Shown piece after piece: positions 3,330 to 63,652 of a stretch of 64,000 nt of DNA. The position numbers were made by a program, and so were the translations under genes. This DNA comes from Anthoceros angustus (taxonomy: Eukaryota > Plantae > Anthocerotophyta). The stretch lies in the NCBI GenBank assembly GCA_010909165.1, contig MU008162.1, forward strand, positions 124,001 through 188,000. Direction: 5' to 3'. The notes under the pieces are model-generated. The model did not search any database, had not been told where the DNA came from, and was given only the letters and a program-made list of their open reading frames with translations. Positions within the stretch are counted from its first letter, which is position 1; each line of letters starts with the position of its first letter.

Positions 3330-3934
3330 GGTTGAAGACGACCCTCGCTTGCGAAGACCTAGCTGGGCGGCAAGCAAGACCGAACTCGGGTGGAGGGGAA
3401 AAGGAAATTGACCGCACAATAGTTTTCTCCGAGGACGAAAGTGTAGAAGTGGGGAAGAAAAACACTGCCATGTCACTTCCTTCAAGGAAGGAGTGACATC
3501 CATTCCAACTCCTCGTACGGATCGACGGATCAGTGCTCGGATGGGGTGCTTCTCATTCCACAGTTTCAAGGCCCATCAATGGGGTGCTACCCATCCCCCA
3601 TCTATCTATGGCCCATCAACATCGTGCCTTCCGCCGTCTCCGTCGGGTGCGGGGCCGCCAATTGGTAGCAAATCCCAGTGCTGGACTTTGATGTATACTT
3701 TGGCACATCTGTAAAGTGTCCGAATTCACTAAAAAAAATGCCATTCAAGGCAATCGCACATGAAAGATCATAAAACAGGGTATGTTATGTTATGTCACCC
3801 TCCGCTATCTTACACATAGTGGCACACAAATCCTACAGAGACTTGGGATTTCACAATCCCAGAGCTGGCTGTGATATGCACGTCCCCTCACGAGCTCTTG
3901 ATCTTCCAGGTCTGGCTGTAATATGCACGGCCCC

Positions 3935-10342: not shown

Positions 10343-10962
10343 GAGCTTAAACTTGCTGCCCGCCTACTGGGGCAAGTTGATTGTATCAAGGAATGACAGT
10401 CTGCCTACTATGTTGAAGAGAAAGTGCCAGACATCCGGGCATTAACCTGATGGCACCGGAGGCACTATACTCTGCCCAGTATGACTTTCACGAGAGAAAG
10501 TACCCACCATAAAGACACGATTTCATTATGCTGATGAAGCACCCGGCTTGTGGATAGGCTCTGAGAGCCTCTCAGGATGATGGCTTTAGCAGTCTTCACT
10601 GAGTTTGCACACTTATCGTCATCCTGTTGAAACTTGGAACTTGTACTCATGGAGCACACATGGTGGCGATCCATGCATAGGAGCCAGCACTGATGCAAAA
10701 GGAACATAAATAACAGTTTCAACTTGCTCCGGTTGAAGGAACTTGTGTGCCCAAAAGATTGACTGAATCGTGTTTCAATGGACTTCGAGTTCATGCAATC
10801 CAAGCTGCACCTCCAAGCATGGTTGCTTGATGGAGCCAGCAGAGACAGGCACGGCGCTCCGTTGGTTTTTGACTTGGAGGAACCAACGTTGGCATACATC
10901 CTCTGCCAAGATGTCTGGCTGGACACAAATTCTCGCAACAAGGATGGTCGCCTGGAGCTCAT

Positions 10963-13900: not shown

Positions 13901-14427
13901 TGCCTGTTTTGCCGAATGCTGCTGTTTGGCACACACTCTTGGGTGCTTGTTTGAAGTGGAGCAATGTGGAGGTGGGACTCCATGCTTTCAATGAAGGCGA
14001 GAAGCTAGACAAGAAAGATGCAGCAGCCTATGTGTCCATGTCGAACATATACACCAGTGCCCACATGTGGGAGCAGGCACAAGAGATGCAGGCGAGGAGA
14101 TTAAGGAACAGGGCATGGAAGGAGCCTGGTCAGAGCTTATGGACAGACATGGATGGTCTGGTGCATAGTTTTCTGGTTGGGGATAAGAAGCATCTTAAAA
14201 GTCAAGCAAGACTGATGAAACAGGCAAATCTCAAAATGAAGAATGGGTATGTGCCACATCTGGAACCGTCACCGCCAAACATATTCAATGACGGAAAGGG
14301 TGAGCATTTGTCTGTTCATTGTCAGAAAGTGGTTATCGCATCTCCCCTCAACAACACACCGGAGGAGGTCCCCATTAGAAGCTACTATGTCCAGGGATGT
14401 GTATTAGGATGGAACGTTTTCGTGTGA
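10963..14427 (+). CDS. PLS-class PPR protein with 104-aa triplets (P36-L37-S31) and a degenerate DYW start
   Basis: 1154-aa ORF (first ATG at 10999). P-motif starts recur every 312 nt (11740, 12052, 12364, 12676, 12988, 13300). E domains and AWKEPGQSLWTD are followed by GYVPHL...HCQK...NTPEEVPIR. Confidence 0.92.
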   Translation: MAPLFCTSHLGRMAGEDNNSDHLASGKALVEMDRRVTDSNWSLLENPDPGSSAFAEYQTSVTADTVSRLCDGGHLIAAVEALGVLVETDCCISTSLFCTVLKKCEVDRDLVLGRRVHAFTMKSGYQSDTFLCNHILRMYAAHGRLQEAMNVFTMVASPDSFMWSSIISAHVKNGQDRQAMELYARMRRTSVKADSHVFVAALQACARGSDLKAGQQVHADVLASGIKPHLFVSNCLVHMYVKCGSLEEAHKVFDGLAHKDVVTWTALIGGYSQSGLGQEALRLYSVMQEEGIAVPNAVTFVCLLQACATVGAPALDKGKQLHAQIQKLGHQADVFVSTSLVTMYVKCGSFEDAQGVFDGLAQKDVVTWNAMIAGCSQLGLGHQAFCLYSAMLEDGMAVPNSVTFLCLLQACARMGTLALENGKQLHGQIRERGYHTDVVVANSLVNMYAKCDSLEDAQRVFDGLVQKDVVTWNALISGYAQQGMGQDALRLFSAMQEEGIAVPDSVTFVSLLQACASLGNPALEKGKQLHMLIRKQGHEADVFVASSLVNMYSKCGSLEDAERVFGRFGQKNVVTWTTMIASYSQQGLGQKALNLYSAMKDEGMAVPNAVTFVCLLQACASVGNLALEKGKQLHSQIREQGHETDVFVANSLVNMYAKCGSFQDAQKVFDRLGHKDVVSWNAMIAGYSQQGMGQEALGLYSAMQDSGIAVPDSLTFVFLLQACASVGTPALEKGKQLHKQIREQGHQADVFVASSLVNMYAKCGSLEYAQRVFDSLAQKNVVTWTAMIAGYSQLGIGQEALRLYNAMQEEGIAVPDSVTFVCLLQACANVAALHLGRQLHAQIIAQGIQADKFVGGSLINMYGKCGSMVNAQQVFDALPKKDVSAWSALIAGYTSQGDSQVVFDLVQRMWKEDIQPVGITFLSVLTVCSHAGLVRKGREFFEAMSSQYGISPTLEHYTCMVDLLGRAGQLDEALAFIRSMPVLPNAAVWHTLLGACLKWSNVEVGLHAFNEGEKLDKKDAAAYVSMSNIYTSAHMWEQAQEMQARRLRNRAWKEPGQSLWTDMDGLVHSFLVGDKKHLKSQARLMKQANLKMKNGYVPHLEPSPPNIFNDGKGEHLSVHCQKVVIASPLNNTPEEVPIRSYYVQGCVLGWNVFV

Positions 14428-46311: not shown

Positions 46312-49200
46312 ATGAAGAGCTCCGTTCGCCCCCGATGTCCACATTTCCCAAATGTGGCTGCCAACGGCAAGTGGGGAATTTGGGCAGACTGTATGCATAC
46401 TCCGCTTGCTGCAACGACAGAAGCTGGCAGAGGGAACGCTTACAGCATTGTGTATGGAAACAGACCTACGTCTGCTGTTGACGTGAAAGGGCCTGGAATG
46501 GGCCAGTCGTGGGCATGGCTGATACTGCAACGTGCTGAAAATGGGCAAGGTGAAGAGGCTCTTAGAATGTGCCAGCAAATGCTTAGAGATGGAGTGGAGC
46601 CAGGGTCTAACATTTTTGTTGCTCTCTTGAAGACGTGCAAAAGCTTCCAGGATCTGAGGAGAGCTCAGATGATTCACGCAGAGGTGGTGAAACATGGGCT
46701 GGAGACAGATTTATACGTGGGCACCATGCTTGTGAATGCTTACACAAAGTGTGGCAGCCTGCAGAATGCCAGGCGTGTGTTTGAGGAATTGCCTTGTCAT
46801 GATGTGGTTTGCTGGACAGCCATGATCATGGGGTATGCCCAGCTGGGAAAGGGCCAAGAGGCTTTGCAATTGTTTGCACGGATGCAACAGGAAGGTCTAG
46901 CTCCCAATGACCGAACATATGTTGGTGCATTGAAGGCTTGCTGTAGCATAGCAGAGTCAGAGGATGGAGCACTTGCGAAAACAGAGTGCCTGGCAACCGT
47001 GAGGGACATTCACTTGGCTGTTCAGAAGGGGAAGTTTGAATGCGATATGTTTGTGGGAAACATGCTAGTGGATGCGTATGCGAAATGTGGGAGCTTGGAG
47101 GAGGCGAGAAGAGTATTCGAGGGAATGCCTCGTCGTGATGTGGTTTCCTGGACGGCTATGATTCTGGGGTATGCTCAGGTGCAGAAGGGCGAAGAAGCTT
47201 TGCGGTTATACTCACGGATGCAGCAAGAGGGTGTGGCACGAAATGACCGAACATATATTGGTGCCCTTAAGGCTTGCATTTCTTTCGCAGGTGTGGAGGA
47301 GAGAAAGGGAGATGATAGAGTAATCTTGAGAAGAAAATGGCTGGAAGCTGTAAGAGCCATCCACAACGACATTGGCAAAGTGATGTTTGAGTCAAATGTA
47401 TTTTTGGGGAACATGCTGGTAGATGCATATGCCAAATGTGGGAGCTTGGAGGATGCTAGGCAGGTGTTTGAGAAAATGCCTCATCGGGATGTGGTTTCGT
47501 GGAATTGCATCATCTTAGCGTGCTCCCAGTTGGGAAAGGGTGAAGAGGCTCTGCAGTTGTACACACGGATGCGACAGAATGGTGTGGAACCTAATGACCG
47601 CACGTATATTGCTGCACTTAAGGCTTGCAGTAGCATGGCAGAAGTGGGGAACAAGGAAGGCGGTGAGAAAGTACTAGTTAAAAAACAGTGCTTGGAAACT
47701 GTGGCATCCATCCACGCAGATGTGGGGCAGGGGAAGTCGAAGTTGGACGCATTCTTAGCCACAATGCTGGTGGATGCATATGCAAAATGTGGGAGCTTGG
47801 AGAAAGCGAGTCAGGTATTCGACAAAATGCCTCGTCGAGATGTGGTTTCCTGGACTGCCATGATCTTGGGGTATGCCCAGATGGATAAAGGCCAAGAGGC
47901 TTGGCAATTGTACATACGCATGCGTGAAGAAGGTGTGGTCCCCGACGACAGAGCATATGTTGGTGCACTTAAGGCTTGCAGTAGCATTGCAGAATCGGGG
48001 AATAGTGACAGCAGAGAAGGAAAGTTTGCAAGAAAACAATGCTTGGAAGCTGTAAGAGCAATCCATGACCAGGTCGTTAACAGGACGCGTGAGTTGGATG
48101 GCTATGTCGGGAATATGCTTGTCGATGCATATGTCAATTGTGGGAGCTTGGAGAATGCTAGACTTGTGTTTGAGCAAATGCCCCGTCGTGATGTGGTTTC
48201 ATGGACTGCCATGATCTCGGGGTATGTTTTGATGGAGAAGGGTGAAGAGGCCCTGCAGTTGTACACACGCATGCAACATGAAGGTGTTGCCCCGGACGAC
48301 CGAACCTATGTTGGTGCACTCAATGCTTGTGGTGCTGTGGCAGGTCTGGAGAAGGGGAAAGAAATCCATGCCCAGATTCGGCAAGCTGGCCTTGAGACCG
48401 ACTCCTTCTTGACAAACAGTTTGATTGATATGTATGGTAAATGCGCCAGCATGCCAGATGCAAAGCAGGTGTTTGATGCCACGGCCACCACAGACATCGT
48501 AGCCTGGAATGCGTTGCTCATGGGATATGCCCGTCAGGGTGAGAGTGAAGTGGTGTTCAACCTGTTCAGCAGGATGAATCAGGAGGGTGTACAGCCAGAC
48601 GACATCACATTCCTTGGTGTTCTCACTGCATGCAGTCAGGTGGGTCTTGTGGACAGGGGGCTAAAGTACTTCGAGGCTATGAGCAAAGACTATGGCGTCT
48701 CCCCCACCATTCAACACTACAACTGCATGGTTGATTTATTTGGGCGTGCGGGCCAACTTCACCAAGCGATGGAGATGGTGAACACGATGCCTTTCCAGCC
48801 TGACAACGTATTGTGGAAATGCGTGTTAAGTGCTTGTCAAAAATGGGGAAACGTGGAGCTTGCAAGGAAGGCATTTGCATGTGCAGTGGCGTTGGATGAA
48901 AGTGACGCTGCACCGTATGTTCTCATGTCCAACATCTATGGGGCTGCTCACATGCCCGACGAGGCCCAAAGAATTCAGGCAATGAGAATGAAATCAGAAG
49001 CATGGAAGGAACCAGGACGAAGCTGGTGGGTGGATGGGCAAGGAAAGGCACATGTGTTTGTTGCGGAGGATGAAGGACATCCTGAAGGCGACAGCATATA
49101 TGCCAAGCTTGGTGAAATTTCGTTCCAGCTGAAGACAGAAAGATATGTACCTTGCCGCGAGCCGATGTTGCAACACAAGCCAGGAAACGTGAAGGCATAG
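46312..49200 (+). CDS. PLS-class PPR protein, E/E+ (WW-type), 4 extra-long L motifs
   Basis: 962-aa ORF of PLS triplets, E1-E2 and AWKEPGRSWWVD. It stops shortly after RYVP, before HSEK. Confidence 0.93.
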   Translation: MKSSVRPRCPHFPNVAANGKWGIWADCMHTPLAATTEAGRGNAYSIVYGNRPTSAVDVKGPGMGQSWAWLILQRAENGQGEEALRMCQQMLRDGVEPGSNIFVALLKTCKSFQDLRRAQMIHAEVVKHGLETDLYVGTMLVNAYTKCGSLQNARRVFEELPCHDVVCWTAMIMGYAQLGKGQEALQLFARMQQEGLAPNDRTYVGALKACCSIAESEDGALAKTECLATVRDIHLAVQKGKFECDMFVGNMLVDAYAKCGSLEEARRVFEGMPRRDVVSWTAMILGYAQVQKGEEALRLYSRMQQEGVARNDRTYIGALKACISFAGVEERKGDDRVILRRKWLEAVRAIHNDIGKVMFESNVFLGNMLVDAYAKCGSLEDARQVFEKMPHRDVVSWNCIILACSQLGKGEEALQLYTRMRQNGVEPNDRTYIAALKACSSMAEVGNKEGGEKVLVKKQCLETVASIHADVGQGKSKLDAFLATMLVDAYAKCGSLEKASQVFDKMPRRDVVSWTAMILGYAQMDKGQEAWQLYIRMREEGVVPDDRAYVGALKACSSIAESGNSDSREGKFARKQCLEAVRAIHDQVVNRTRELDGYVGNMLVDAYVNCGSLENARLVFEQMPRRDVVSWTAMISGYVLMEKGEEALQLYTRMQHEGVAPDDRTYVGALNACGAVAGLEKGKEIHAQIRQAGLETDSFLTNSLIDMYGKCASMPDAKQVFDATATTDIVAWNALLMGYARQGESEVVFNLFSRMNQEGVQPDDITFLGVLTACSQVGLVDRGLKYFEAMSKDYGVSPTIQHYNCMVDLFGRAGQLHQAMEMVNTMPFQPDNVLWKCVLSACQKWGNVELARKAFACAVALDESDAAPYVLMSNIYGAAHMPDEAQRIQAMRMKSEAWKEPGRSWWVDGQGKAHVFVAEDEGHPEGDSIYAKLGEISFQLKTERYVPCREPMLQHKPGNVKA

Positions 49201-49244
49201 GGTAGGATAGGTATGGTCGAAATATATCCTGGTGAGAAGGCAAA

Positions 49245-51833
49245 TTATACTGCATGACAATTCTCATGGTTGAAGAGGAGTCTGTTTCCGTTCATACGGG
49301 GCCTGCTGAACTTGCAAACATTTTTTCGGATGTTCCGATCTCGAGTCACGAACACATGTACCTTCCCTGCCATGTCCATCCAACAGCTGCGTCCAGGCTC
49401 CTTCCAAGCTCCTGAGGCCACACGCTTTGCCTGGATATCGTTTGCATCCTGTGGCATGCGTCGAGCAGCATAGATGTTTGCCATCAAGACATATACTGCA
49501 GGGTCACTCGTATCCAATTCCATGGCACATTCAAATGCCTGTCTCGCAACCACAACATTCCCCCACTTCTGACAAGCACCCAGAACACATTTCCACACTG
49601 CAAGGTCAGGTTGGAGAGGCATCATGTTGGCTATCTCCAGTGCCTTCTCGACCTGGCCTGCCCGGCCAAGTAGATCGACCATGCAGTTATGGTGCTCGAC
49701 TGTTGGGGGGATGCCGAAGTCTCGGCTCATAGCGTCGAAGTACTTTTGGCCTGTTTCCACCAGACACGCATGGCTGCATGCCTTCAGCATACCAAGAAAT
49801 GTGATCTTGTCTGGCTGCACGCCCTCCTGCTTCATCCTTTCAAACAAGTCAAATACAACATCACTCTGTCCTTGATGGGCATATCCCCCAATCAAGGCAT
49901 TCCATGCCACAACATCCCTCGTGGACCCAGCCTCGAACACCTGCCTTGCATCCACCATGCTCGAACATTTAGCATACATATCGATCAGACTGCTTGTGAT
50001 GAAGGGGCCAGCCTCCATATCAGATTTCACGATCTGGGCATGAATTTTCCGTCCAACCTCCAGTCCTGCTACACTACCACAAGCGTTGAGAGCCGCAACG
50101 TAAGTCCTCTCGTTCGGCACCACTCCTCCCTGTTGCATCCGACCGAATAATTGCAAAGCCTCGTCACCCTCCTCCATTTGCGAGTAGCCCATGATCATGG
50201 AATTCCATGATACCACATCACGATCATGCATGTTCTCGAACACTTGTCTAGCATCCACCAAGCTTCCACATTTGGAGTAAGTATCCACGAGCATGTTTCC
50301 TAAGAACACGTCCGACCGAGCATGTCTCTTCCCAGCATCAGTGTAGATACCTCTAACAACTGCTAGGCACTCTCTCTTTGCCCGAGTTCTGTCACCACCA
50401 CTGTGAAGCCGCTCACATGACTCGGCAATGGCTCGGCAAGCCTGAAGTGCAGCAATATAAGTTCTCGGGTCGGGGACAATACCTTCCCGTCGCATCCTTG
50501 AATAGAGTTGCAAAGCCTCTTCACCCTTACCCATCTGAGTGCACCCCAGGATCATGGCAGTCCAGGAAGCTGCATCACGACGAGGCAGTTCCTCAAACAC
50601 CCGCCTGGCATTTTCCAGGCTCCCACACTTTGCATATGCATCAACCAGCATGGTCCCCACAAATACATCCAGCTCAGACTTCCCCCTCTCTACATCTGCA
50701 TGGATCCTGGTCACAACTTCCAGGCTCGTTCGTTTCAGCATTCTTTCGCCTTCACCTTCCCTGTCCTCCGCTTCTGCAAGGATACTACAAGCCTTCAGAG
50801 CACCAACATACGTCTGGTAATTCGGCACCACACCTTCCTGTCTCATCCGTGCGAATAACTGCAAGGCCTCTTCACCCTGCTCCATCCGGGCGTACCCGAA
50901 GATCATGGCAGTCCAGGAAACCACAGTACGCACAGACATGCTCTCGAACACCAGCCTTGCATCCTCCACACTGCCACATTTTGAGTAGGCGTCCACTAGC
51001 ATGTTCGCCACGAACACATTCGACTCAAGCTTCCTCGTCCCGATATCTCTGTGTATGATCCTCACTCTCTCCAGGCTTGTTCTTCGCACAAGTAGTCCAT
51101 CACCACCATCCCTCTCCCCCATTTCTGCAATGCTACTGCAAGCATTCAGTGCAGCAACATACGTTCGGGCATTTGGGATCACACCGTCCGTTTTCATCCG
51201 TTCGTACAGATGCAGAGCTTCTTCCCCGTTCCCCAACTGTGCGTAGCCCAGGATCATGGCAGTCCAGGAAGCCACATCACGATGAGGCATTCCCTCCAAC
51301 ACCATCCTAGCATTCTCCAGGCTCCCACATTTGGTGTAAGCAGTTACAAGCATGGTGCCCACGTACGAATCTGTCTCAAACCCATGTCTGATCACCTCTC
51401 CTTGAATTCGCTTAACCCTCTCCAGATCCTGCAAATGACAGCATGCCTTCAACAGAGGGACAAAGGTGTGTGGCTTTGGTTCCACTCCGTCGTCTCGCAT
51501 TTCCTCATACAGTATGAGAGCCTGTCTGTGCTGCCCGGACTTGACATACTGGGACATCAGCTGTGTCCAGGCATACTCCCCTCGTTCAGGCCACTTCAGA
51601 CCAACGACATTACCAGGTGCCCATGCACTATCAAAGCTGCCGCCGTGTGTTCCTCCAACTCTCGTGGATAAGGAAACCCTTTTCAGAACCTGTGTCACCC
51701 CTGGAATACATCTCCCGTGTGCCCACGGGTTCCGATCTCGAAGCTTGAGATGGAACTCGGCATAGGACCATCCAAACAGAGAGTCCACCAAGGCTTCACC
51801 AACATTGACCATAAGTTCATCACGAGCGCACAT
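49245..51833 (-). CDS. PLS-class PPR protein, E (WW-type variant), 3 extra-long L motifs
   Basis: 862-aa ORF ending AWKEPGRSCWMDMAGKVHVFV followed by an unrelated tail. Confidence 0.93.
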   Translation of the reverse strand: MCARDELMVNVGEALVDSLFGWSYAEFHLKLRDRNPWAHGRCIPGVTQVLKRVSLSTRVGGTHGGSFDSAWAPGNVVGLKWPERGEYAWTQLMSQYVKSGQHRQALILYEEMRDDGVEPKPHTFVPLLKACCHLQDLERVKRIQGEVIRHGFETDSYVGTMLVTAYTKCGSLENARMVLEGMPHRDVASWTAMILGYAQLGNGEEALHLYERMKTDGVIPNARTYVAALNACSSIAEMGERDGGDGLLVRRTSLERVRIIHRDIGTRKLESNVFVANMLVDAYSKCGSVEDARLVFESMSVRTVVSWTAMIFGYARMEQGEEALQLFARMRQEGVVPNYQTYVGALKACSILAEAEDREGEGERMLKRTSLEVVTRIHADVERGKSELDVFVGTMLVDAYAKCGSLENARRVFEELPRRDAASWTAMILGCTQMGKGEEALQLYSRMRREGIVPDPRTYIAALQACRAIAESCERLHSGGDRTRAKRECLAVVRGIYTDAGKRHARSDVFLGNMLVDTYSKCGSLVDARQVFENMHDRDVVSWNSMIMGYSQMEEGDEALQLFGRMQQGGVVPNERTYVAALNACGSVAGLEVGRKIHAQIVKSDMEAGPFITSSLIDMYAKCSSMVDARQVFEAGSTRDVVAWNALIGGYAHQGQSDVVFDLFERMKQEGVQPDKITFLGMLKACSHACLVETGQKYFDAMSRDFGIPPTVEHHNCMVDLLGRAGQVEKALEIANMMPLQPDLAVWKCVLGACQKWGNVVVARQAFECAMELDTSDPAVYVLMANIYAARRMPQDANDIQAKRVASGAWKEPGRSCWMDMAGKVHVFVTRDRNIRKNVCKFSRPRMNGNRLLFNHENCHAV

Positions 51834-52974
51834 CTACACCATCACTCTAAATTGCATGGGAGTGGTCTCAAGCGGATGAACCGCACTAGGACTCCACGTC
51901 GTCTCTTGCGGGATGCGGTCCTGCTCAAGGTGCCACCTACAACAGAGCTCAAGGGGCCTTTGTATTCTCTTCACTGTTGCAGACCAAGGACATGGCACAA
52001 TGCTACAGAGAAATCTCATGGCGGAGCAGCGAGATTCTGCACTTTTGGGGTACCTGACCACATTCATGCACTTGGTGTCTGATTCGCAGACGTACCGCTG
52101 CGGGTTGTCGAAAGATCTCACAACGGAAGCTGGAGGAGTGATGTACTCCATGTCAGAAGGACATGTCTTTATTACATGGAAGAAGCGTTGAAGTATCCAT
52201 TCTGAAGGCCTGTCGAGCGGAAGGAGTGGAAGCGGACATAGGCTCCGGTAGCCCAGTATGCGTGAACAAGTCTGTTGGGCAGCAAAACCCAGCATTCGTA
52301 CATGATTTTTGCTGCCCAAAAATCATTTACGAACGCCGGCTCCTACACATCGCAGCCTTAGCCTAATAGGAGAGACGTGTGTTCTGTCCAGGCTCCAAAT
52401 GTAGGTCGGAAAGTGGATGTCACTTGCTACTGGTCCTCGATGGTCAAAAGCTTGATACCTGAAATTTTCAGAATGGGGGGGGGGGATTTCAGATGCATTA
52501 GCTCCTGCTCCCGCCCACAGAAGCAAACGTTCAAACAAGTGCCAGGACCACCAAGTTGAGTCAGAACTCACCACTCCTTCTGCTGCTCCAAAATTGTACA
52601 CCGACTTTGCTGATCTCGACCACAGTAGCAATGGGTAAAAATGCGGCAAAAACCTGTGGACCTGCCAAAGTGGGTGAGGATCGTGAGGCCGGTGATAGAG
52701 CCTGCAAAATTGCTGAGCATTCAAGAATCCTTTCCTCAACAGTTGCTATCATTCTCCTCACCTTCCAGGACAGCGGAAAGTAATGTGTGTGGTGCAAACA
52801 ATTCGAGATTCGTAGCTACTTGCAGCTCCTCCACCAACAATGCGAGGCTGCAAGCTACATGCCACGATCCTACTCGTTGAACTCAGAATGATAATAGCTC
52901 CACCACGTTCGCCAGGCGTCGTTGTAAGCATGGAAGCCCTGAAATTAGTGCTCGCCTCCTTGCAGCTAGCCATG

Positions 52975-55900
52975 TTAAACCCCCACACTTCTTTCACCCG
53001 CTGACACAGGTTCCTCCTTTGCATCATCTGGCATGTGAGGTATATAATCTCCTTCCTTGACTTTAGCCCAAAGATTTCCAACCATTGCATAAATATCTCG
53101 GCTTTCAGGATGTCCTTGATCCCCCACCATGAAAACATGTAACTTCCCCTTATTATCCATCCACCAGCTCAGACCTGGTTCCTTCTTTGCCTGTGAGTCG
53201 CTTCGCATTGTGTCAATCTGCTTTGCCTCCTCTGGCATGTGAGCAGCTGCATAAATTGTCGCCATCAAAACATAAGGTGCAGCATCACTTCTGTCCAGCA
53301 TCACAGCCAAATTAAATGCATGCCTTCCAATCTCAACATTTCCCCATTTTCGACATGCACCCAAAATGCATTTCCATATAGCGCTGTCAGGATGGAAAGG
53401 CATCGTCTGGACTACCTGCATCGCCTTGTTGATCTGGCCTGCACGGGCAAGGAGATCGATCATGCAGCTATAGTGTTGTATTGTTGGAGTGATGTCATAA
53501 TCTCGAGACATAGCTTCAAAGTTCTCCTGGGCCCTTTCCACAAGACCCAAATGACTGCACACAATGAGAACAGCAACAAATGTAATCCCGTCGGGCTGTA
53601 CACCATCCTGCCGCATCCTCTCAAGCAAGTTGAAGACAACTTCACTGTCTCCTTGATGGGCATAGCCCGCAATCAATGCATTCCAAGCTACAATCTCCCT
53701 AGTGGGCATTGCATCAAACACCCGCTGTGCATCCAGCATGCTCGAACATTTGCCATACATATCAATCAGACTAGTTGATATGAAGGGGCCCGACTCCAGG
53801 TGGGCCTCCATAATGTGGGCGTGGATTTCCTTCCCCATGTTCAGCCCTGCCACACTACCACAGGCACTTAGCACACCAACATAGGTTCGTTCGTTGGGTA
53901 CCACCCCTTCCTGTTGCATCCGTGCATACAGTTGTAAAGCCTCTTCACCCTTCTCCATCTGAGAGTATCCCAGGATCATGGAAGTCCATGAGATTACATC
54001 ACGATGAGCCATTTCCTCAAACACCTTCCGAGCATCGCCCAGGCTCCCACATTTTGCAAATGCATCCACTAGCATGTTCGCCACAAACACATTAGACTGA
54101 ATTAGGTCCTTTTCAACATCTCGCTGGATGGCTCTCACAGTTTCCACACACTGTTTCCTTTGATCAGATCCATTTCTGTCTCCCCCTTCCACAATGGTAA
54201 TGCAGGCCTTAAGTGCACCAACATACGTTCGGTCATTTGGTACCACCCCTTCCTGTTTCATCCGTTTGTATAATTCCAAAGCCTCTTCACCCTTTGCCAT
54301 CTGGGTGTATCCCAAGATCATGGAATTCCACACGACCGTATCACGACTAGGCAAGTTCTCAAACACCTGCCTAGCACTCTCTACGCTCCCACATTTTGCA
54401 TACGCATCAACGAGCATTGCCCCTACAAATGCATCCAACTCAAACTTCCCCCTTAGAAGATCTGAGTGGATGGTTGTCACCATTTCCAAGCATGTTCCTT
54501 TCCCAGATACTCCTTCAGTGCCATTTCTCTCCGTCTCTGCAATACCACTGCAAGCCTTCAGTACTGATACATACGTTCTGTCATTTGGGACCAGACCTTT
54601 CTCTTGCATGTGTGCGTACAGTGTCAAAGCCTCTGAGCCCTGTTCCATCTGCACACACCCGGAGATCATGGCTGTCCAGGAAACAACATTGTGAACAGGC
54701 ATTTCGTCAAAGACCTGCCTAGCATTTTCCAGGCTCCCACACTTTGCATATGCATCAACTAGCATTGTTCCTACGAATACATCCAGCTCAAACTTCCGTT
54801 TCCTAACATCTGCATGGATTGCTTTCACTGTTTTCAGGCACTCTTGCATCCCAACTCCACAGCTCCTACCCCTAAATTCTGCAATGGCACAGCAAGCCTT
54901 CAGTGCTCCAACGTATGTTCGGTTATCCGGGATCACACCTTCGACTTGAATCCGCATATATAATTGCAAAGCCTCGTCTCCCATGCCCATCTGGGCGTAC
55001 CCCAAGATCATAGAATTCCACGTGACCACTGTCCGGACAGGCATCTCGTCAAACACACGTCTTGCATTTTCGAGGCTCCCACATTTTCCATACGCATCCA
55101 GTAACATGTTTGCCACAAACACGTTCAGAACGAAGTTCTTCTTCCCAGCATCTGCGTGAATCGCTCTCACAATTTCAAGGCACTGCTGTCTAACAAGCAT
55201 TATATCAGTACCATTGCTTCCCCCGGTCTCTGCCATGGCACTGCAAGCCTTAAGTACAGCAACATATGTCCGATCATTAGGTTGCACACCGTCCTGTCGC
55301 ATCCGTTGATATAACTGCAAAGCCTCTTCACCTTTCTCCCTTTGGGCGTGCCCCAAGATGATGGCAGTCCAAGAGACCACATCGTGAGTAGACATACTCT
55401 CAAACACCCATTTAGCATCACCCAAGCTCCCGCATTTTGCATACGCATCCACCAGCATGCTCCCCACAAACACGCTGGACTCAAATTTAACCTTCCTGGC
55501 ATCTGCATGGATGGCTCGCACACTATCCAGACATTGCTTGCCACCAGCTGTTCCCAGATAGGCATTTCTCTGCTCCGATTCTGCAATACAGCTGCAAGCT
55601 TTAAGAGCACCAACAAACGTTCGGTCATTTGGAACGACACCTTCCAGTCGCATCCGATTGTACAACTGCAAAGCCTCCTCGCCCTTCTGCATCCTCCCAT
55701 AGCCCAAGATCATGGCATTCCAACAAACCACATCACGATGGGGCATTTCCTCAAACACCCGCTTAGCATTTTTCACGCTTCCACAGTTTGCATATGCGTC
55801 CACAAGCATGGTTCCTACGTATAAGTCTGTCTCGAAACCTGACCTGACAACTTCTGCATGAATCTGCCTTGCACTTTCCAGGTCCTGCAAGCTACTGCAA

Positions 55901-56169
55901 GCCTTCAACAAAGCAATAAAAGTCTGTTGCCCTGGTTCCACTTTACTCTTGCGCATTTCCTCATACAATTTGAGAGCCTGTCTACCTTGCCCGTACTTGC
56001 TACATTGCCATATTTGCGCTGCCCAGGAATGAGGCCTTTGCAGGTCAAGAACATCATCAGGTCCGCGTTCACCTTCCAAGTTGGTCCGTCCAAGCCTTCG
56101 CATCCTCCGCTGTCGTTGGCCATGTGGACTCCCCTTCCGCTTGGCTGGTGTTGGAGGTGAAGCCTGCAA
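52975..56169 (-). CDS. PLS-class PPR protein, E+ (WW-type), 5 extra-long L motifs
   Basis: 1064-aa ORF. The first ATG is at 56103, but an acceptor-like ttgcag at the ORF start suggests an upstream exon. It ends KKEPGLSWWMD...DYIPHMPDDAKEE then stops before HSEK. Confidence 0.93.
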   Translation of the reverse strand: MQASPPTPAKRKGSPHGQRQRRMRRLGRTNLEGERGPDDVLDLQRPHSWAAQIWQCSKYGQGRQALKLYEEMRKSKVEPGQQTFIALLKACSSLQDLESARQIHAEVVRSGFETDLYVGTMLVDAYANCGSVKNAKRVFEEMPHRDVVCWNAMILGYGRMQKGEEALQLYNRMRLEGVVPNDRTFVGALKACSCIAESEQRNAYLGTAGGKQCLDSVRAIHADARKVKFESSVFVGSMLVDAYAKCGSLGDAKWVFESMSTHDVVSWTAIILGHAQREKGEEALQLYQRMRQDGVQPNDRTYVAVLKACSAMAETGGSNGTDIMLVRQQCLEIVRAIHADAGKKNFVLNVFVANMLLDAYGKCGSLENARRVFDEMPVRTVVTWNSMILGYAQMGMGDEALQLYMRIQVEGVIPDNRTYVGALKACCAIAEFRGRSCGVGMQECLKTVKAIHADVRKRKFELDVFVGTMLVDAYAKCGSLENARQVFDEMPVHNVVSWTAMISGCVQMEQGSEALTLYAHMQEKGLVPNDRTYVSVLKACSGIAETERNGTEGVSGKGTCLEMVTTIHSDLLRGKFELDAFVGAMLVDAYAKCGSVESARQVFENLPSRDTVVWNSMILGYTQMAKGEEALELYKRMKQEGVVPNDRTYVGALKACITIVEGGDRNGSDQRKQCVETVRAIQRDVEKDLIQSNVFVANMLVDAFAKCGSLGDARKVFEEMAHRDVISWTSMILGYSQMEKGEEALQLYARMQQEGVVPNERTYVGVLSACGSVAGLNMGKEIHAHIMEAHLESGPFISTSLIDMYGKCSSMLDAQRVFDAMPTREIVAWNALIAGYAHQGDSEVVFNLLERMRQDGVQPDGITFVAVLIVCSHLGLVERAQENFEAMSRDYDITPTIQHYSCMIDLLARAGQINKAMQVVQTMPFHPDSAIWKCILGACRKWGNVEIGRHAFNLAVMLDRSDAAPYVLMATIYAAAHMPEEAKQIDTMRSDSQAKKEPGLSWWMDNKGKLHVFMVGDQGHPESRDIYAMVGNLWAKVKEGDYIPHMPDDAKEEPVSAGERSVGV

Positions 56170-56735
56170 TCACAGATCCTGCACCAGATCAGTTGCTTCC
56201 CAAACCAGAAAACCTTTCGCTTGCCTTCCAGTCTGCCGCTGGCTCGGTGGCTGGTGGACCAGCAGCATCATCGCACCTGGAATTGACGCCCGGATGTCTG
56301 ATGGGCGATGAACATGTTGATGAGCCTCTTGGCAGCATTGCGGGAAGGGAGATGACTATTGCAAGAGATTGCAGCGTCCGCAAGCGCTGTACTTCAATTG
56401 GTAACATAATCGTTGCATGCACATTTGGCAACGTCGAAACAGGGACGGCTTGCTGTGAGAAGACCGCCTCTAGGATGACTATGGAGATGTCGACCAACTT
56501 CATTTGCAATAGACCTGTGGGCCATCTTGTAATGCAAATCTCGACATCTACGACAGCTGAGCCTCTCGCACTTGTGGAGTCCGGAGTCTAAATTCCTGGA
56601 GATACAAGGATCCCCAGGTGCTCCAGGCGCGAAGAAACGATATTCAGTCGAGTTTCAAAGACTGTACATGTGTTAACATGTGAGGGAGAGATAGAACCCT
56701 GGACCACGGAAACTAACAATAGTGTTCTTTTTCTG

Positions 56736-57900
56736 ACAATAACAACAACAATAACTTTATTTATGTCGACTAAGGATGGAAAGACAGAGATAAAGTGGTA
56801 TAAAAAGAGATAAAATATTTCGTATACATATATATAGATGAGTGTAAGATGTGAAAAGAGAAGAAAAGCTATAAGAGGCAAAAGAGCTATAAAGAGTCCA
56901 ACTAGGTCTGCCAAAAATTAAGAAGCCTAGAGAGACATAGGCCAATGAGTTTCGAATATGAAACGAGAAGAATCTGCGTAAGAAAAAACAGCACACTAAA
57001 AAAGAAGAGTCTAACGAGCCCGACAAAGCAATAGAAGAGGAAGTGCGATTCAGATTCAGGGATAAGGGAGCGGAGCTTGCAAATATGGGCAGCTTGAAGA
57101 GGTGTGGACTTAAGTCAACGGTCGATCTCGATTTGGGGGCAGCTTGAGGAGGTGTGGACTTAAGCCAATGATCGGTCTCGATTCGGAGGTGGGAGCTAAC
57201 ACGGAATTGACCGATGGAAAGTGCGGAACTTGAAGGAGAGAGGGCAACTAAGGTAACGTGGTAGAACAAGAACCCAAATGGGGGTTAACACGCTCCTTGT
57301 AAAAATGGAGTTTAGACGTTAGGGGGGCAAATGAGAAGGAGAAATAAGTAAGACGAAGATATCTTAATTTAAGGTCCCGCCACATGGTTGGGAGGGAGAT
57401 GAGAAAGAGAGAGAGGGAATAGGGAGTTGGCCAAACCAGAAGCGTAAGGGGTGTAAAGTCAAGCCGTTTGAGTCAAGTAGCTGCTTGGGAGAGGCAAAAA
57501 AAAAGAAGCTTGGAAATCAATATTGGGCCAAAGGAAGCGGGATGATATGTAGGCAAGGAGATGGTAGGGGGCAAGGGTTAACAATATCAAGGAGGAGGAG
57601 GAGGTGAAGAGGACGATAGAGGCGAAAGAGGCCATCAGTTCAAGGAAAATGTATCAGAAATGAAGATAGATAAAGGGTGAAATGCTTACAAACGATGTGA
57701 GCAAAGCGATGTGAGCAATAAGAAAGGAGGCTTGTATTTTTTTCGAGGAAGAAAAAAAACCGCCCCAAACCTCGGCACCATATAGTGGAGAGTATGACCA
57801 GTGTTTAAAAAACTGCTGTTAACGTCTGAATATTCATCATGTATAAAGCCCGGCCCAGAGCACCAGCAGATCTCTTGGTGCGCGGGAAGAGGCACAAAAA
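56736..57900 (-). mobile_element. Decayed 3' end of a LINE (RTE/L2-like ORF2 C-terminus with microsatellite tail)
   Basis: The minus strand reads SKLHFYKERVNP, IGQFRVSSHLRIETDHW and HICKL...ESESHFLFYC (zinc-knuckle-like) across frameshifts. It ends aataaag followed by ttattgttgttgttattgt. There is an internal ~50-bp duplication (57087-57184). The 5' boundary is approximate. Confidence 0.72.
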
Positions 57901-58409
57901 GTCCAAATTGAACTTCGAGCTAACCCTTGAGCTAGTTCAACGTGGAGATTGAGATGCCAGCTTTCAAATAGGAAATCTCCAATTGACCCTACATTCGTGC
58001 GCTCTTCACAGTTCCGACGTAACCTGAGGATCGGAGATACTTCGCAGCTCAGAGATTGAACCTCTTCTGGCCATCCGGCATGTTGTTTCCAACGATGGGA
58101 CGCAGTATCTAAAGCAACACAGTGGCCACACTTTCGTCATTACCTTGCTGATAAGACCACTTCCATCGCACGCCTATGCTTGCATCTGACCTAGCAACTA
58201 CCATCAAGATGAACAGCAATCAAGGAGCAAGACGGGGACTCACTTACCGGTTTCGATAGCATGACTGTCATCGGCATCCTCCACAGGTACAGAAGAATTC
58301 TAGCTCTCTGGGTGGCGGTGTGTCATAGATGCCTGTTTTGCATTCCTGCTCTAACCCTGTGTCCGACAGATTCATCATAAACCTCAATGATCAACTCTTT
58401 TCAGCGGGG

Positions 58410-60635
58410 CTAAGCAATAGCCCCTTGATCTTCCATGCAATGAAGAAGGGGTGCGTATCCTTCTTCGCTGCACGTCTTGATCAGAAGTTCTTCTAACATT
58501 GCGTATATGAGTAGACTGTCAGGATGTTCCCTACTGCCCACCACAAATACATGAGATTCCCCGTTCATATCAATCCAAAAGCTTTGTCCTGGTTCCTTCC
58601 ATGCTCCTGCCTCCAATCTCATTGCCTGAATCTTCGTTGCCTCTTCTGGCATGTTTGCAGCCGCATATATATTTGCCATAAGGACATATACAGCGGCATC
58701 GCCTTGATCCAAACCCACTGCACAATCAAATGCCTGTCTTGCAAGCATTATGTTACCCCATTTCTGACAAGCTCCCAAAACACATTTCCACACAGCACTG
58801 TCAGGTTGGAATGGCATCATCCTCACCATCTCCATGGCTTTGTGGACTTGGCCAGATCGGCCAAGTAGATCAACCATGCAGCTGTAGTGTTGGATAGTGG
58901 GAGTGATGCCATACTCACTGCTCATAGCCTCGAAGTACTTCTGGCCACTGTCCAAAAGACCCACATGACTGCACACAACAAGAATACCCAGAAATGTGAC
59001 ATCGTTTGGCTTTACACTCTCTTCCTTCATCCTCTCAAACAAGTCAAAGACGGCTCCGCTCTCTCCCTGTCGGGCATATCCTGCAATCAAAGCATTCCAT
59101 GCCACAATGTCTCTGGTGCGCATTCCATCAAACACCTGTCGCGCATCCACCATGCTCGAACATTTGCCATACATGCCAATCAAACTACTTGCCATGAAAA
59201 AGCCAGCCTCCAGGCCAGCTCCCAAAATCTGAGCATGGATCTCCTTCCCCTTCTCTAGTCCTGCCAGAGAACCACAAGCGTTGAGTACAGCTACGTATGT
59301 TCGATCATCTGGTACAAGGCCTTCTTTCTGCATCTGTCTGAATAGTTGCAAAGCCTCTTCACCCTTGTCTATCTGGGAATATCCCGCGATCATCGAATTC
59401 CAGCAAGCCACATCACGATGAGGCAGGCTCTCAAACACCCGCCTTGCATTCTCCAGGCTCCCACATTTTGCATACACATCCACCAGCATCGTCGCTACAA
59501 ATACATCCCTCTCAAAGTTGTCCTTCCTCACATCAGCATGGATAATTTCGACAGCTTGCAGGCACTTCTTTTTCAAAATTACTCCACCGCTGATATTTTT
59601 GTCCCCCGATTCTGCAATGGCACTGCAAGCCTTCAGTACAGAAACGTATGTCCGGTGGTTTGGAACAACACCTTCCTGTCGCATTCGCACAAACAGTTCT
59701 AAACCTTCTTCACCCACATCCATCTGGGCATACCCTAGTATCAGGGCAGTCCATGAAACCACATTGTGAACAGGCATTTTGTCAAAAACCTGTCTAGCAC
59801 TTTCCAGGCTGCCACATTTCGCATACGCATCCACTAGCATTGTGCCCACATACACATTCGATTCAAACTTCATCTTTGCAAGGTCTGCATGGATGACCCT
59901 CACAGTTTCCAGGCATTGTCTTCTGGCAAGTTCAGTACATTTTCCTGATTCTGCGATGGCACTGCAAGCCTTCAGTGCACCAACATATGTTCTGTTGTTG
60001 GGGACCACACCTTCCTGGTGCATCTGTCTATACAGCTGCAAAGCCTCTTCGCCCTTATTCACCTGGGCATACCCCAGAATCATTGCGGTCCAGGAAACCA
60101 CATCCCGATGGGGCATTTCTTTGAACACACGCTTAGCATTTTCTATGCTCCCACATTTGGCATAGACATCCACAAGCATGGTTCCCACAAACAAATCCTT
60201 CTCAAAACCACTTCTTACCACCTCTGCGTGAATTTGCTTCGCAGTTTCCAGGTCTTGCAAGGCACTGCAAGCCTTCAACAGGGAAACAAAGGTGCGTGGC
60301 CCTGGCTCCACTCCACTCCTCCGCATTTTCTCATACACCTTCAGAGCCTGCCTACCTTGCCCACAACTAATCTGCTGCGCTATTAGCGCCGTCCAGGAAT
60401 ACTCTCCCTGTTGAGACCGCTTCAATTCCACAGCGATATCATGTCTACACCTGTCTTGTTCCCCAAGTAACCCCTCGCTGTAGTTCAGATCCTCCACAGA
60501 ACTCTGCCATGCCGCAACCTTGGTCCTCTGCCAACCGGAACCCACGCAGCCATAGCTCAAGACCTGCGGCCAGCCCATGAGTCCCTTACCAGATAGCATC
60601 GTATATTCTCGCATCCATTCCAAGAGCAGATTCAC
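58410..60635 (-). CDS. PLS-class PPR protein, E+ (WW-type variant), 2 extra-long L motifs
   Basis: 741-aa ORF (first ATG at 60614) ending AWKEPGQSFWID...EEGYAPLL then a stop. Confidence 0.93.
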   Translation of the reverse strand: MNLLLEWMREYTMLSGKGLMGWPQVLSYGCVGSGWQRTKVAAWQSSVEDLNYSEGLLGEQDRCRHDIAVELKRSQQGEYSWTALIAQQISCGQGRQALKVYEKMRRSGVEPGPRTFVSLLKACSALQDLETAKQIHAEVVRSGFEKDLFVGTMLVDVYAKCGSIENAKRVFKEMPHRDVVSWTAMILGYAQVNKGEEALQLYRQMHQEGVVPNNRTYVGALKACSAIAESGKCTELARRQCLETVRVIHADLAKMKFESNVYVGTMLVDAYAKCGSLESARQVFDKMPVHNVVSWTALILGYAQMDVGEEGLELFVRMRQEGVVPNHRTYVSVLKACSAIAESGDKNISGGVILKKKCLQAVEIIHADVRKDNFERDVFVATMLVDVYAKCGSLENARRVFESLPHRDVACWNSMIAGYSQIDKGEEALQLFRQMQKEGLVPDDRTYVAVLNACGSLAGLEKGKEIHAQILGAGLEAGFFMASSLIGMYGKCSSMVDARQVFDGMRTRDIVAWNALIAGYARQGESGAVFDLFERMKEESVKPNDVTFLGILVVCSHVGLLDSGQKYFEAMSSEYGITPTIQHYSCMVDLLGRSGQVHKAMEMVRMMPFQPDSAVWKCVLGACQKWGNIMLARQAFDCAVGLDQGDAAVYVLMANIYAAANMPEEATKIQAMRLEAGAWKEPGQSFWIDMNGESHVFVVGSREHPDSLLIYAMLEELLIKTCSEEGYAPLLHCMEDQGAIA

Positions 60636-60991
60636 CCGTTCTCACTGAATCCCGTACAGAAACAACACAATACCTTGGATGTGAAATCAGATTTAGCAGT
60701 GCGGGGAGGCAACAACATCGGTGGTGCTCTACTACCAGCTAGGCGGATTGCCAGAATACTTCTCTGGTGGGCACTCGGTAAACAGCTGGGAAGTCTAGAT
60801 GCAATCAGCTATCAGTTTGGACTCGATCAGTTTGTAGTCCTTCTCGCCAAAGCTGAGGGTCTCCTCAGCGCCACATAGGCTGCCCACCTAGAAGTGAAGA
60901 GCTTGAGATAGTTGTAGCTCAACCTGTTGAAGTGCTGATCTGAGGACTCCCAGAACAAGATTGCACCTGGCCGTCGTACCAGTGTAAAAAC

Positions 60992-63652
60992 ATGTGTGCC
61001 TCATTTGCTTACAGTTGGTGTGAAGTTTGTGAAGGTTGGTGGACTAACCATAATGGATTGCCCTCGGACCAGCTCCATCGATCTCTGTCACATGGCAAGA
61101 CCCAGCGTGCATTTTGGATGAATGACACCAACACTTCACGATGGGAGATACAGGCTGTAAGTGGAGCTATGCTATCCACGGAACCTAGCAGAAGCTCTGT
61201 TATTGGATGCAGACCTCGGAGTGGGGAGTTTTCCTGGACAGAGCTCATTTCGCAACATACCAAGTCGGGACAATTTAGACAGGCTCTAAATCTGTATGTA
61301 GAAATGCGAAAAGATGAAGTAGAACCAAGGTCACACACCTTTGTGGCTCTGTTGAAAGCATGCAGTAGTTTGCAGGACTTGAGAAGTGTTAGAGAGATCC
61401 ACTCTGAGGTGGTTAGGTGTGGGTTTGAGACTGATGTGTATGTAGGCACTATGCTTGTGGATGCCTATGCCAAGAGTGGGAGCTTGGAGAATGCGAGGCG
61501 GGTTTTTGAGGAAATGCCGCATCGAGATGTCGTCTCCTGGAACGCCATGATCACAAGTTACGCCAAGATGGAGAAGGGGAAGGAGGCTTTACAATTGTTT
61601 ACAAGGATGCAACAGGAGGGTGCTGTCTTGGCGGACGAAAGAACATATGTTGGGGCACTGAAGGCCTGCAGTATTATTGCAGAATCGGGGCAAAAAAGTG
61701 GCTGTGATGGTTTTCTTGTTAGGAAACAATGCCTAGAAACTGTAACAGCCATCCATGCAGATGTTAGGAATGGGGGGTTTGAGTCAAATTCGTTTGTGGG
61801 GACAATGCTAGTCGATGCCTATGCTAAATGTGGAAGCGTGGAGAGTGCTAGAAATGTATTTGAGAACATGCCTGAACACAGTGTGGTATCTTGGACTGCC
61901 ATGATATTGGGTTATGCCCTGATGGACAAGGGTGAAGATGCTTTGCAACTGTACAGGGAGATGCAACAAGATGGTGTGGATCCGAATGATCGGACTTATG
62001 TTTCTGTACTCAAAGCCTGCAGCAGAATTGCAGAGCTTGGGGAGCGAGAGGGTGGTAATGGAACACTTGTGAAACATAAATGCCTGGAGATGGTCAGAGA
62101 GATCCATGCAGACATCGCAAAGGGCCAGTTTGGTTCTAATGTGTTTGTGGGGAACACGCTCGTGGACGTGTATGCAAAATGTGGGAGCTTGGAGAATGCT
62201 AGACGGGTTTTTGAAGTGATGCCTCATCGTGATGTTGTTTCCTGGAACGCCTTGATCGGGGGGTATGCCCAGATGGAAAGGGGTCAAGAAGCGTTACAAC
62301 TGTATGCACAAATGCAACATGAAGGTGTGGCACCAAATGATCGAACATACGTTGGTGTACTGAAGGCTTGCAGCATCGTTGCAGAATCAGGAAGGAGAGA
62401 AGGTGATGGTTGGATACATGCCAGGAAACTATGCCTGGAAACTGTGACAACCATCCACACAGATTTGAAGACTGAAAAGTTTGAGTCAGACGTATTTGTA
62501 GGGACAATGCTGGTGGATGCTTATGCGAAGTGTTGGAGCCTGGAAAATGCAAGGCGAGTGTTTGAAGCAATGCCTCAAAGGGATGTAGTTTCCTGGACTG
62601 CCCTGATCCTGGGGTACGCTGAGATGGAGAAGGGTGAAGAGGCTTTGAAGTTGTATGCGCAGATGGAACAGGAAGGTGTGGTGCCAAACAGTCTAACCTT
62701 CGTTGCTGCATTGAATGCCTGTGGTAGTATGGCAGGACTGGTAAAAGGAAAGCAAATTCATGCCCAAATTCTGCAAGCTGGTCTTGAGTGTGGCTCCTTT
62801 TTGACTAGCAGTTTGATTGATATGTATGGCAAATGTTCAAGCATGTCGGATGCACAGCAGGTGTTTGATGCAATGCCCACCAGAGAGGTTGCTGCATGGA
62901 ACGCATTGATTGTTGGGTATGCCCGTCAAGGGGAGAGTGAAGTCGTTTTCCAGTTGTTCAACAGGATGGGTCAGGAAGGTGTGAAGCCAGATGGAATTAC
63001 GTTTCTTGGTCTTCTCAGTGTGTGCAGTCATGTGGGTCTTGTGGACATGGGTGAAAAGTACTTTGAGGCAATGAGCAGAGAGTATGGCATCTTCCCGACT
63101 ATTCAGCACTACAATTGCATGGTTGATCTCCTGGGACGTGCAGGTCAAGTCCAGAAGGCCATGGAGATAGTGCAGATGATGCCTTTCCAACCAGAGAGTG
63201 CAGTCTGGAAATGTGTAATGGGTGCTTGTCAAAAGTGGGGACACGTTGAGCTGGGAAGAATTGCATTTGAAGGTGCAATCAGGTCGGATGCATGTGATGC
63301 TGCTCCATATGCATTAATGTCCAACATATATGCCGCTGCTCAAATGCCAGACGAGGCAAAGAAAATTCAAGCAATGAGGGTGGAATCACGAGCATGGAAG
63401 GAACCAGGACAGAGCTGGTGGGTGGACATGAGCGGGAATGCACATGCATTTGTTGCAGGGGATGGAAAACATCCTGAATGTGAAGATATTTTTGCGAAGT
63501 TGGGAGACCTTATGGTCCAAATTACAACAGCGGGCTATGCATCTAACCTTGATTCCATACACAAAGACATACTGGATGATGAGGAGGAGGCCTCATATGG
63601 ACAGGGGAAGACTGCTATACCCCTTGCCGGCTATTACCCTCTTCCTCGTTGA
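60992..63652 (+). CDS. PLS-class PPR protein, E+ (WW-type), 3 extra-long L motifs, degenerate DYW start
   Basis: 886-aa ORF ending AWKEPGQSWWVD...GYASNLDSIHKDILDDEEEASYGQGK. Confidence 0.93.
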   Translation: MCASFAYSWCEVCEGWWTNHNGLPSDQLHRSLSHGKTQRAFWMNDTNTSRWEIQAVSGAMLSTEPSRSSVIGCRPRSGEFSWTELISQHTKSGQFRQALNLYVEMRKDEVEPRSHTFVALLKACSSLQDLRSVREIHSEVVRCGFETDVYVGTMLVDAYAKSGSLENARRVFEEMPHRDVVSWNAMITSYAKMEKGKEALQLFTRMQQEGAVLADERTYVGALKACSIIAESGQKSGCDGFLVRKQCLETVTAIHADVRNGGFESNSFVGTMLVDAYAKCGSVESARNVFENMPEHSVVSWTAMILGYALMDKGEDALQLYREMQQDGVDPNDRTYVSVLKACSRIAELGEREGGNGTLVKHKCLEMVREIHADIAKGQFGSNVFVGNTLVDVYAKCGSLENARRVFEVMPHRDVVSWNALIGGYAQMERGQEALQLYAQMQHEGVAPNDRTYVGVLKACSIVAESGRREGDGWIHARKLCLETVTTIHTDLKTEKFESDVFVGTMLVDAYAKCWSLENARRVFEAMPQRDVVSWTALILGYAEMEKGEEALKLYAQMEQEGVVPNSLTFVAALNACGSMAGLVKGKQIHAQILQAGLECGSFLTSSLIDMYGKCSSMSDAQQVFDAMPTREVAAWNALIVGYARQGESEVVFQLFNRMGQEGVKPDGITFLGLLSVCSHVGLVDMGEKYFEAMSREYGIFPTIQHYNCMVDLLGRAGQVQKAMEIVQMMPFQPESAVWKCVMGACQKWGHVELGRIAFEGAIRSDACDAAPYALMSNIYAAAQMPDEAKKIQAMRVESRAWKEPGQSWWVDMSGNAHAFVAGDGKHPECEDIFAKLGDLMVQITTAGYASNLDSIHKDILDDEEEASYGQGKTAIPLAGYYPLPR

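Follow-up and report, generated by a model that had tools for sequence, protein, structure and literature searches.

Six intact genes for PLS-class pentatricopeptide repeat (PPR) proteins, located in a 64-kb stretch of the hornwort Anthoceros angustus (assembly GCA_010909165.1, contig MU008162.1, positions 124,001 to 188,000; hereafter the window, 64,000 nucleotides (nt)), carry L motifs of 46-53 amino acids (aa), the additional residues forming an insert that preserves the reading frame and lies in the turn linking helices a and b. Judged by its sequence, this long L belongs to an old PLS-class subfamily that is also present in ferns and in Selaginella. The interpretation that we favour, with a probability of about 0.55, is that the six genes are intact tandem paralogues of an old plant organellar PLS subfamily and that the insert is a structural brace or a flap on the RNA backbone.

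PLS-class PPR proteins are encoded by 7 long open reading frames (ORFs) in the ORF list of the window, and the Pfam models PPR, PPR_1, PPR_2 and PPR_3 matched the window proteins with E-values down to 1e-131. The proteins were segmented with regular expressions, P motifs being anchored on their Trp and S motifs on their start, and the units in between were measured. This revealed a regular periodicity of 35 / L / 31 aa and a total of 20 long L motifs in six genes (3, 4, 3, 5, 2 and 3 in 7646-, 46312+, 49245-, 52975-, 58410- and 60992+, genes being named by first coordinate and strand). The segmentation thus reproduced the tally of an earlier reading made from the DNA letters alone (hereafter the sequence-only reading), which had counted the same 20 motifs and a Cys before helix b in 17 of them. 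The lengths were 46, 47, 48 (twice), 49, 50, 51 (twelve times), 52 and 53 aa, as compared with 35 aa for the normal L motifs of the same six proteins, and the combined length of P and L (P+L) in the inner triplets was 80-87 residues instead of the usual 69. Alignment to the 35-aa L motifs of the same proteins indicated that the extra length is a single block, extending from the end of helix a to the Leu-Glu that opens helix b. It measures 11-18 aa, usually 16, the latter being taken as the ancestral length. The L-type signature and the helix-turn-helix are retained in the long L, as judged from this alignment and from the AlphaFold helices, but the canonical length of 35-36 aa is not.

The position of the long motifs along the array was also regular. 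Every internal L bears the insert at the a/b turn except the first L1, the last L1 (in the triplet preceding P2-L2-S2) and L2. The sequence-only reading was right that the first L and the final L2 are of normal length; it erred in taking L2 as the sole normal L of the C-terminal region, as the last L1 also measures 35 aa in 6/6 proteins. At the C terminus, P2-L2-S2 is followed by E1-E2, in blocks that align with those of relatives, and the six genes stop at E2 or at a short E+ stub. The Pfam E_motif model matched 46312+ and 52975-, with E-values of 3e-10 and 5e-10, and a weak E+ match (E = 0.0046) was obtained in 52975-. The genes and their long L motifs are given below; all were delimited by segmentation, with further evidence in brackets.

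7646..10342, minus strand: PLS-E/E+ PPR gene with 3 long L (898-codon ORF)
9419..9571, minus strand: long L of 51 aa in 7646-
9068..9220, minus strand: long L of 51 aa in 7646-
8723..8869, minus strand: long L of 49 aa in 7646-
46312..49200, plus strand: PLS-E/E+ PPR gene with 4 long L (962-codon ORF, Pfam PPR and E_motif)
46909..47046, plus strand: long L of 46 aa in 46312+
47245..47397, plus strand: long L of 51 aa in 46312+, Trp replacing Cys
47596..47748, plus strand: long L of 51 aa in 46312+
47947..48099, plus strand: long L of 51 aa in 46312+
49245..51833, minus strand: PLS-E PPR gene with 3 long L (862-codon ORF)
51018..51170, minus strand: long L of 51 aa in 49245-, Ser replacing Cys
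50667..50819, minus strand: long L of 51 aa in 49245-, Ser replacing Cys
50310..50468, minus strand: long L of 53 aa in 49245-
52975..56169, minus strand: PLS-E/E+ PPR gene with 5 long L (1064-codon ORF, Pfam PPR and E_motif, weak E+)
55474..55626, minus strand: long L of 51 aa in 52975-
55123..55275, minus strand: long L of 51 aa in 52975-
54781..54924, minus strand: long L of 48 aa in 52975-
54433..54582, minus strand: long L of 50 aa in 52975-
54091..54234, minus strand: long L of 48 aa in 52975-
58410..60635, minus strand: PLS-E/E+ PPR gene with 2 long L (741-codon ORF)
59856..59996, minus strand: long L of 47 aa in 58410-
59505..59657, minus strand: long L of 51 aa in 58410-
60992..63652, plus strand: PLS-E/E+ PPR gene with 3 long L, query for the fold and for the searches (886-codon ORF)
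61634..61789, plus strand: long L of 52 aa in 60992+
61988..62140, plus strand: long L of 51 aa in 60992+, in the folded segment (AlphaFold)
62339..62491, plus strand: long L of 51 aa in 60992+, in the folded segment (AlphaFold)

The unusual length taken alone could speak for an artefact, namely unspliced mini-introns or pseudogenes read as ORFs. We give this explanation practically no weight. The inserts, of 33-54 nt, are in frame in 20/20 motifs; an in-frame GT..AG pair spanning at least 30 nt is missing from 7/20, and in none of the 20 could an intron exceed 57 nt. On these grounds the intron reading was rejected. Moreover, the six genes are uninterrupted ORFs of 741-1064 codons without a stop, their sequences bear the mark of purifying selection (see below), and the same insert occurs in RefSeq proteins of other plants. 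It also occurs in 7 ORFs from Trinity transcript assemblies of relatives, indicating that it is kept in the mature mRNA. Two proposals of the sequence-only reading are thereby borne out: that the inserts are coding and not spliced, and that the long L is a distinct, longer class of motif.

Selection on the motif parts was estimated by Nei-Gojobori counts over 66 pairs of 117-aa P-L-S units with a 51-aa L. The ratio of nonsynonymous to synonymous substitution rates (dN/dS) was 0.20 for P, 0.24 for helix a, 0.47 for the insert, 0.34 for helix b and 0.18 for S, these values being rough because synonymous sites are near saturation. The insert is the least constrained part of the motif, yet it is under relaxed purifying selection. 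Conserved positions within it are Gly18, Arg20, Gly22, Leu27, Arg/Lys29-30 and Gln31, in the numbering of the 51-aa motif. The sequence-only reading had suggested comparing the loop with the helices, and the insert did exceed both of them; given its ratio and its fixed positions, however, the "hypervariable" display loop of that reading is an overstatement.

Relatives were collected by a word-based protein search with three triplets of 60992+, which gave a set of the best 120 matches with up to 57% identity, and their triplets were scored with a hidden Markov model (HMM) built from the long units. Such a model had been proposed in the sequence-only reading, and it recovered long Ls in 14/15 Selaginella moellendorffii RefSeq proteins, at the same site and with the same modal length, as well as in most Logan proteins among the best 120 matches. 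A word search limited to a single long L yielded no candidates. A second search, with a hairpin-type Logan protein as query, added fern proteins with runs of long Ls (Ceratopteris richardii, 3/3; Adiantum nelumboides, 3/3; A. capillus-veneris, 3/16). No long L was present in the matched proteins of Diphasiastrum, Cryptomeria, Ginkgo, two mosses and one liverwort among the best 120 of the first search, and the Adiantum proteins of that set had normal Ls only; the sample is biased to the best matches, and a taxon without long L in it may still have them. In the long-L relatives P+L was 85 versus 69, and the arrangement seen in the window applied family-wide, with a normal first L, long inner Ls and a normal last L. 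The +16 long L is therefore common to Selaginella and ferns, and the subfamily is not defined by the Anthoceros gene cluster as had been supposed. The NCBI entry of one PLS-type PPR of 1077 aa with normal-length Ls (P0202) gives the amoeba Balamuthia mandrillaris as its source, and either transfer of a plant-type PPR or contamination could account for it.

A tree was computed from a 330-aa C-terminal block, running from the last triplet to E2 and containing no long L, for 98 relatives and the 7 window genes. On this tree the long-L trait required 3 changes, versus 31.7 with shuffled labels. The six long-L genes of the window formed one clade (Shimodaira-Hasegawa-like approximate likelihood ratio test (SH-aLRT) support of 96), nested in a clade of 17 rows in which every protein has a long L (SH-aLRT 96), while a second all-long clade, of 48 rows, had a support of 100. 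When all 66 long-L proteins were forced into one clade, the likelihood was above that of the quick free search (approximately unbiased test, p-AU 0.757) and the constraint was not rejected, on a quick tree with few named taxa. A single old origin of the +16 insert shared by the window genes, Selaginella and ferns fits these data, although it is unproven. The six genes have a pairwise C-terminal identity of 65-71% and alternate in orientation. Because they form one well-supported clade, they represent a local tandem expansion and not dispersed retrocopies.

The seventh PLS PPR gene of the window (10963-14427, plus strand, 1154 codons) is without long L, yet it lies near the long-L clade on the C-terminal tree. 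It has a milder L variant, with P+L of 72 versus 69 in six triplets and of 70 in the triplet of the last L1; one extra residue lies where P meets L, and two more precede the Leu-Glu that opens helix b. The frame of this gene enters the start of a DYW-like segment and then meets a stop, so that the deaminase is truncated or broken. Neighbouring the PPR cluster, a single-exon ORF of 382 aa (2418-3566, minus strand) corresponds to Pfam GPI2, a subunit of phosphatidylinositol N-acetylglucosaminyltransferase (E = 9e-81), and is an ordinary nuclear housekeeping gene. A 378-codon ORF at 9260-10396 (plus strand), antisense to 7646-, is probably a by-product of codon usage in the repeat and no gene.

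Two-triplet segments from Selaginella and from the window (60992+) were modelled with AlphaFold2, using the same 25-row alignment. The Selaginella model displayed beta-hairpins with strands at 88-90/93-95 and 205-207/210-212, predicted with 10-residue block means of 90 or more for the local confidence score pLDDT (model mean 95.1). In the window model there were no strands; helix a reached 20 residues and helix b 21-23, with a turn of 2-4 residues and a pLDDT of 65-74 at the tip (model mean 91.5). For the window clade, the model thus agrees with the proposal of the sequence-only reading that both helices are lengthened, with a short tip of low confidence. The solved structures nearest to the window model were 9kfx_A, a synthetic PPR-DYW with RNA (TM-score 0.82), and 5iww_D, a designer PLS protein with MORF9 (TM-score 0.70).

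The sequences differ in the same sense. Inserts of Selaginella and of the 48-row clade have an Asp-Gly turn flanked by hydrophobic pairs, together with a conserved Lys. In the window clade Gly replaces the hydrophobic pair of the first strand (positions 22-23), where the hydrophobic fraction is 0.08, versus 0.4 and 1.0 at the two positions in Selaginella, and the Gly content of the insert is 18%; the loss of this pair and the Gly-rich insert would account for the missing hairpin in the window segment. We read the insert of the window clade as a probable degenerate hairpin. The two types have in common the insertion site, the modal length of 51 aa, the normal first and last L, the second-strand hydrophobics and the Lys/Arg that follows them. 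They differ in that the Selaginella type is confidently predicted to form a beta-hairpin round the Asp-Gly turn, whereas the window type is more variable in length, has Cys in place of Ser/Ala/Thr at one position (see below) and is predicted to have lengthened helices.

Ten PPR motif variants are distinguished in recent reviews and structural studies, and the canonical L1 among them measures 35-36 aa (motif set of Cheng et al. 2016, as given in PMC11897456 and PMC13324415). The long L occupies the same slot in the P-L-S triplet as this canonical L1 and has the same helix-turn-helix core, including Thr-Phe/Tyr at 3-4, Ala-Cys at 10-11, the Leu-Glu opening helix b, Ile-His and a terminal Asp/Asn. 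Apart from the insert, the window motifs differ from it in helix b, where Val-Arg stands in place of Gly-Lys. The PPR literature searched, which did not cover Cheng 2016 and Gutmann 2020, contained no description of an L that exceeds 36 aa. These two groups of authors reportedly carried out large-scale annotation of PPRs from Selaginella and ferns, and may well have met the long L. The sequence-only reading had predicted that standard HMMs would miss the motif. Pfam PPR models indeed do not match a long L presented alone, but neither do they match a normal 35-aa L presented alone, so that the prediction holds in a trivial sense and Pfam is uninformative on single motifs. What the window adds is a degenerate flavour of the long L, a clade-specific Cys, a link with the loss of DYW, and the exclusion of long Ls from the motifs that contact DYW.

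How might the insert act? The fifth residue of the long Ls is almost always Val or Ile, and these motifs therefore probably add little base specificity; they would still pair one-to-one with RNA bases without setting specificity. In the solved PPR-DYW-RNA structure, phosphates are held by basic residues near the end of helix a, at position 13 and, in an L1, at position 9 (PMC13324415). Once per triplet the insert would jut from that edge of the solenoid at which helix a terminates, emerging right past these phosphate-holding residues and keeping a basic residue of its own. Most likely it would stiffen the L motif and/or set the conserved basic residue on the RNA backbone. Such a brace or flap could raise RNA affinity independently of cofactors in plants without MORF, and for editing a deaminase would then have to come in trans to the C-terminal motifs, which are unmodified. 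The L motifs of seed plants are described as ill-placed for RNA binding until MORF rotates helix b (PMC13041630), and MORF as absent from non-seed plants (PMC13041630, PMC8110955). The MORF/RIP system (5iww) and the insert both bear on the L motif, which is the weak point of PLS arrays, and a built-in brace could reach the same binding-competent geometry. MORF is, however, a separate protein, and the residue touched by MORF9, Lys29, is close to the C-terminal end of helix b (PMC11094755). The insert lies at the opposite end of that helix, so that as a substitute for MORF it would act through another site.

Several observations weigh against a brace or backbone flap. Moss PLS proteins with 35-aa Ls edit without MORF (PMC8110955), hence MORF independence needs no brace. 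The relaxed selection, the variable length and the loss of strand-1 hydrophobics in the window clade would equally fit a dispensable, decaying appendage. The tip of the window-type insert is predicted at low confidence, and the helical extension in the window model is doubtful for so Gly-rich a stretch. A wider proposal, which we put forward tentatively and regard as possible more than probable, is that the long L is a functional hairpin module that clamps the RNA backbone or braces the array, marking an old class of specificity factors for editing, mostly deaminase-less and MORF-independent, that hornwort-like plants would share with lycophytes and ferns and that current motif definitions and target-prediction tools leave unmodelled.

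The rival explanations rank as partner docking, tolerated relic and redox site. In the first of these, partner proteins would dock on the insert, for instance a trans-acting DYW deaminase or some other editosome cofactor, which the DYW-less proteins would have to recruit. Long-L proteins do mostly lack a DYW domain of their own. A tblastn search with the DYW end of a Selaginella protein detected no DYW core (His-x-Glu and Cys-x-x-Cys-His) near the six genes in any frame or elsewhere in the window, the matches ending at E2/E+; a DYW hidden downstream or in another frame was rejected on this result. Among relatives with a complete E2 block, the DYW core was present in 3/60 long-L proteins versus 20/38 proteins with normal Ls only (Fisher p = 8e-8), an association that reflects few clades and is therefore not phylogenetically independent. 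The hairpin of the Selaginella type is predicted to be rigid and surface-exposed, and its display once per triplet would amount to a repeated epitope. Yet three DYW-bearing relatives keep long Ls (the Selaginella protein P0080 is a case of a DYW-bearing long-L protein), and the tip is poorly conserved in the window clade. Furthermore, the deaminase of the solved PPR-DYW structure is seated on the final S1-P2-L2-S2-E1-E2 (PMC13324415), a region in which the Ls are normal throughout the family. As long Ls are absent from exactly the motifs that contact DYW, from which they may be sterically excluded, the inserts are unlikely to be a deaminase dock. In angiosperms, recruitment in trans runs through the E/E+ end (PMC13324415, PMC11094755). 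The window arrays, ending after E2 and a short E+ stub, resemble the DYW-less PPR-E/E+ factors CRR4 (with DYW1) and CLB19 described there; these angiosperm factors differ in having ordinary L motifs. Docking in general appears unlikely, though it heads the rivals, and its trans-deaminase form, as the sequence-only reading had it, runs counter to both the DYW-contact region and the three relatives that combine DYW with long Ls.

We find it rather improbable, and rank it below docking, that the insert is a tolerated relic which arose once in an ancestral L motif, spread by triplet and gene duplication and is by now, in the window clade at any rate, nearly or wholly without function. The variation of the insert between 11 and 18 aa in that clade, its Gly content, the lost hydrophobics of strand 1, the low pLDDT of the tip and a dN/dS that is the highest of all motif parts are what such a relic would show. 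However, this dN/dS is well under 1, no long L has reverted to 35 aa in the six genes, 12/20 are exactly 51 aa, and Leu27, Arg/Lys29-30 and Gln31 are conserved; the insert is kept in lycophytes, ferns and the Anthoceros window genes, and its placement rule is conserved family-wide. Least probable of the three, and in our view very unlikely, is a redox-sensitive disulfide or metal site in each long L, formed by the Cys of the helix a Ala-Cys and the Cys before helix b. The latter directly precedes the Leu-Glu of helix b in 17/20 long Ls, the exceptions being a Trp in 46312+ and a Ser twice in 49245-. At position 32 of the 51-aa motif, Cys is found in 9/12 local motifs of that length and in 14/17 motifs of sister proteins, and reasoning from the model would put positions 11 and 32 at about equal height in the antiparallel helix pair. 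But the 48-row clade, ferns and Selaginella have Ser, Ala or Thr at position 32, the first Cys occurs in L motifs generally, and no other conserved His or Cys is peculiar to long Ls. It is this confinement of the Cys to one clade that disfavours the redox or metal site of the sequence-only reading; the pattern at position 32 is that of a small residue packed where helix b begins, and not that of a ligand.

Target prediction and design of PPR proteins rest on a fixed list of motifs, and the 51-aa L occurs in many proteins of Selaginella, ferns and Anthoceros. If the long L is unmodelled, motif registers and predicted binding sites would be off or incomplete for the whole subfamily. Should the link between long Ls and the loss of DYW survive phylogenetic correction, it would suggest that these lineages edit with a separate trans-deaminase system. 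If the hairpin does stiffen the L motif or hold on to the RNA backbone, it would reveal how PLS arrays work without MORF in seedless plants and would provide a natural part for cofactor-independent designer editors.

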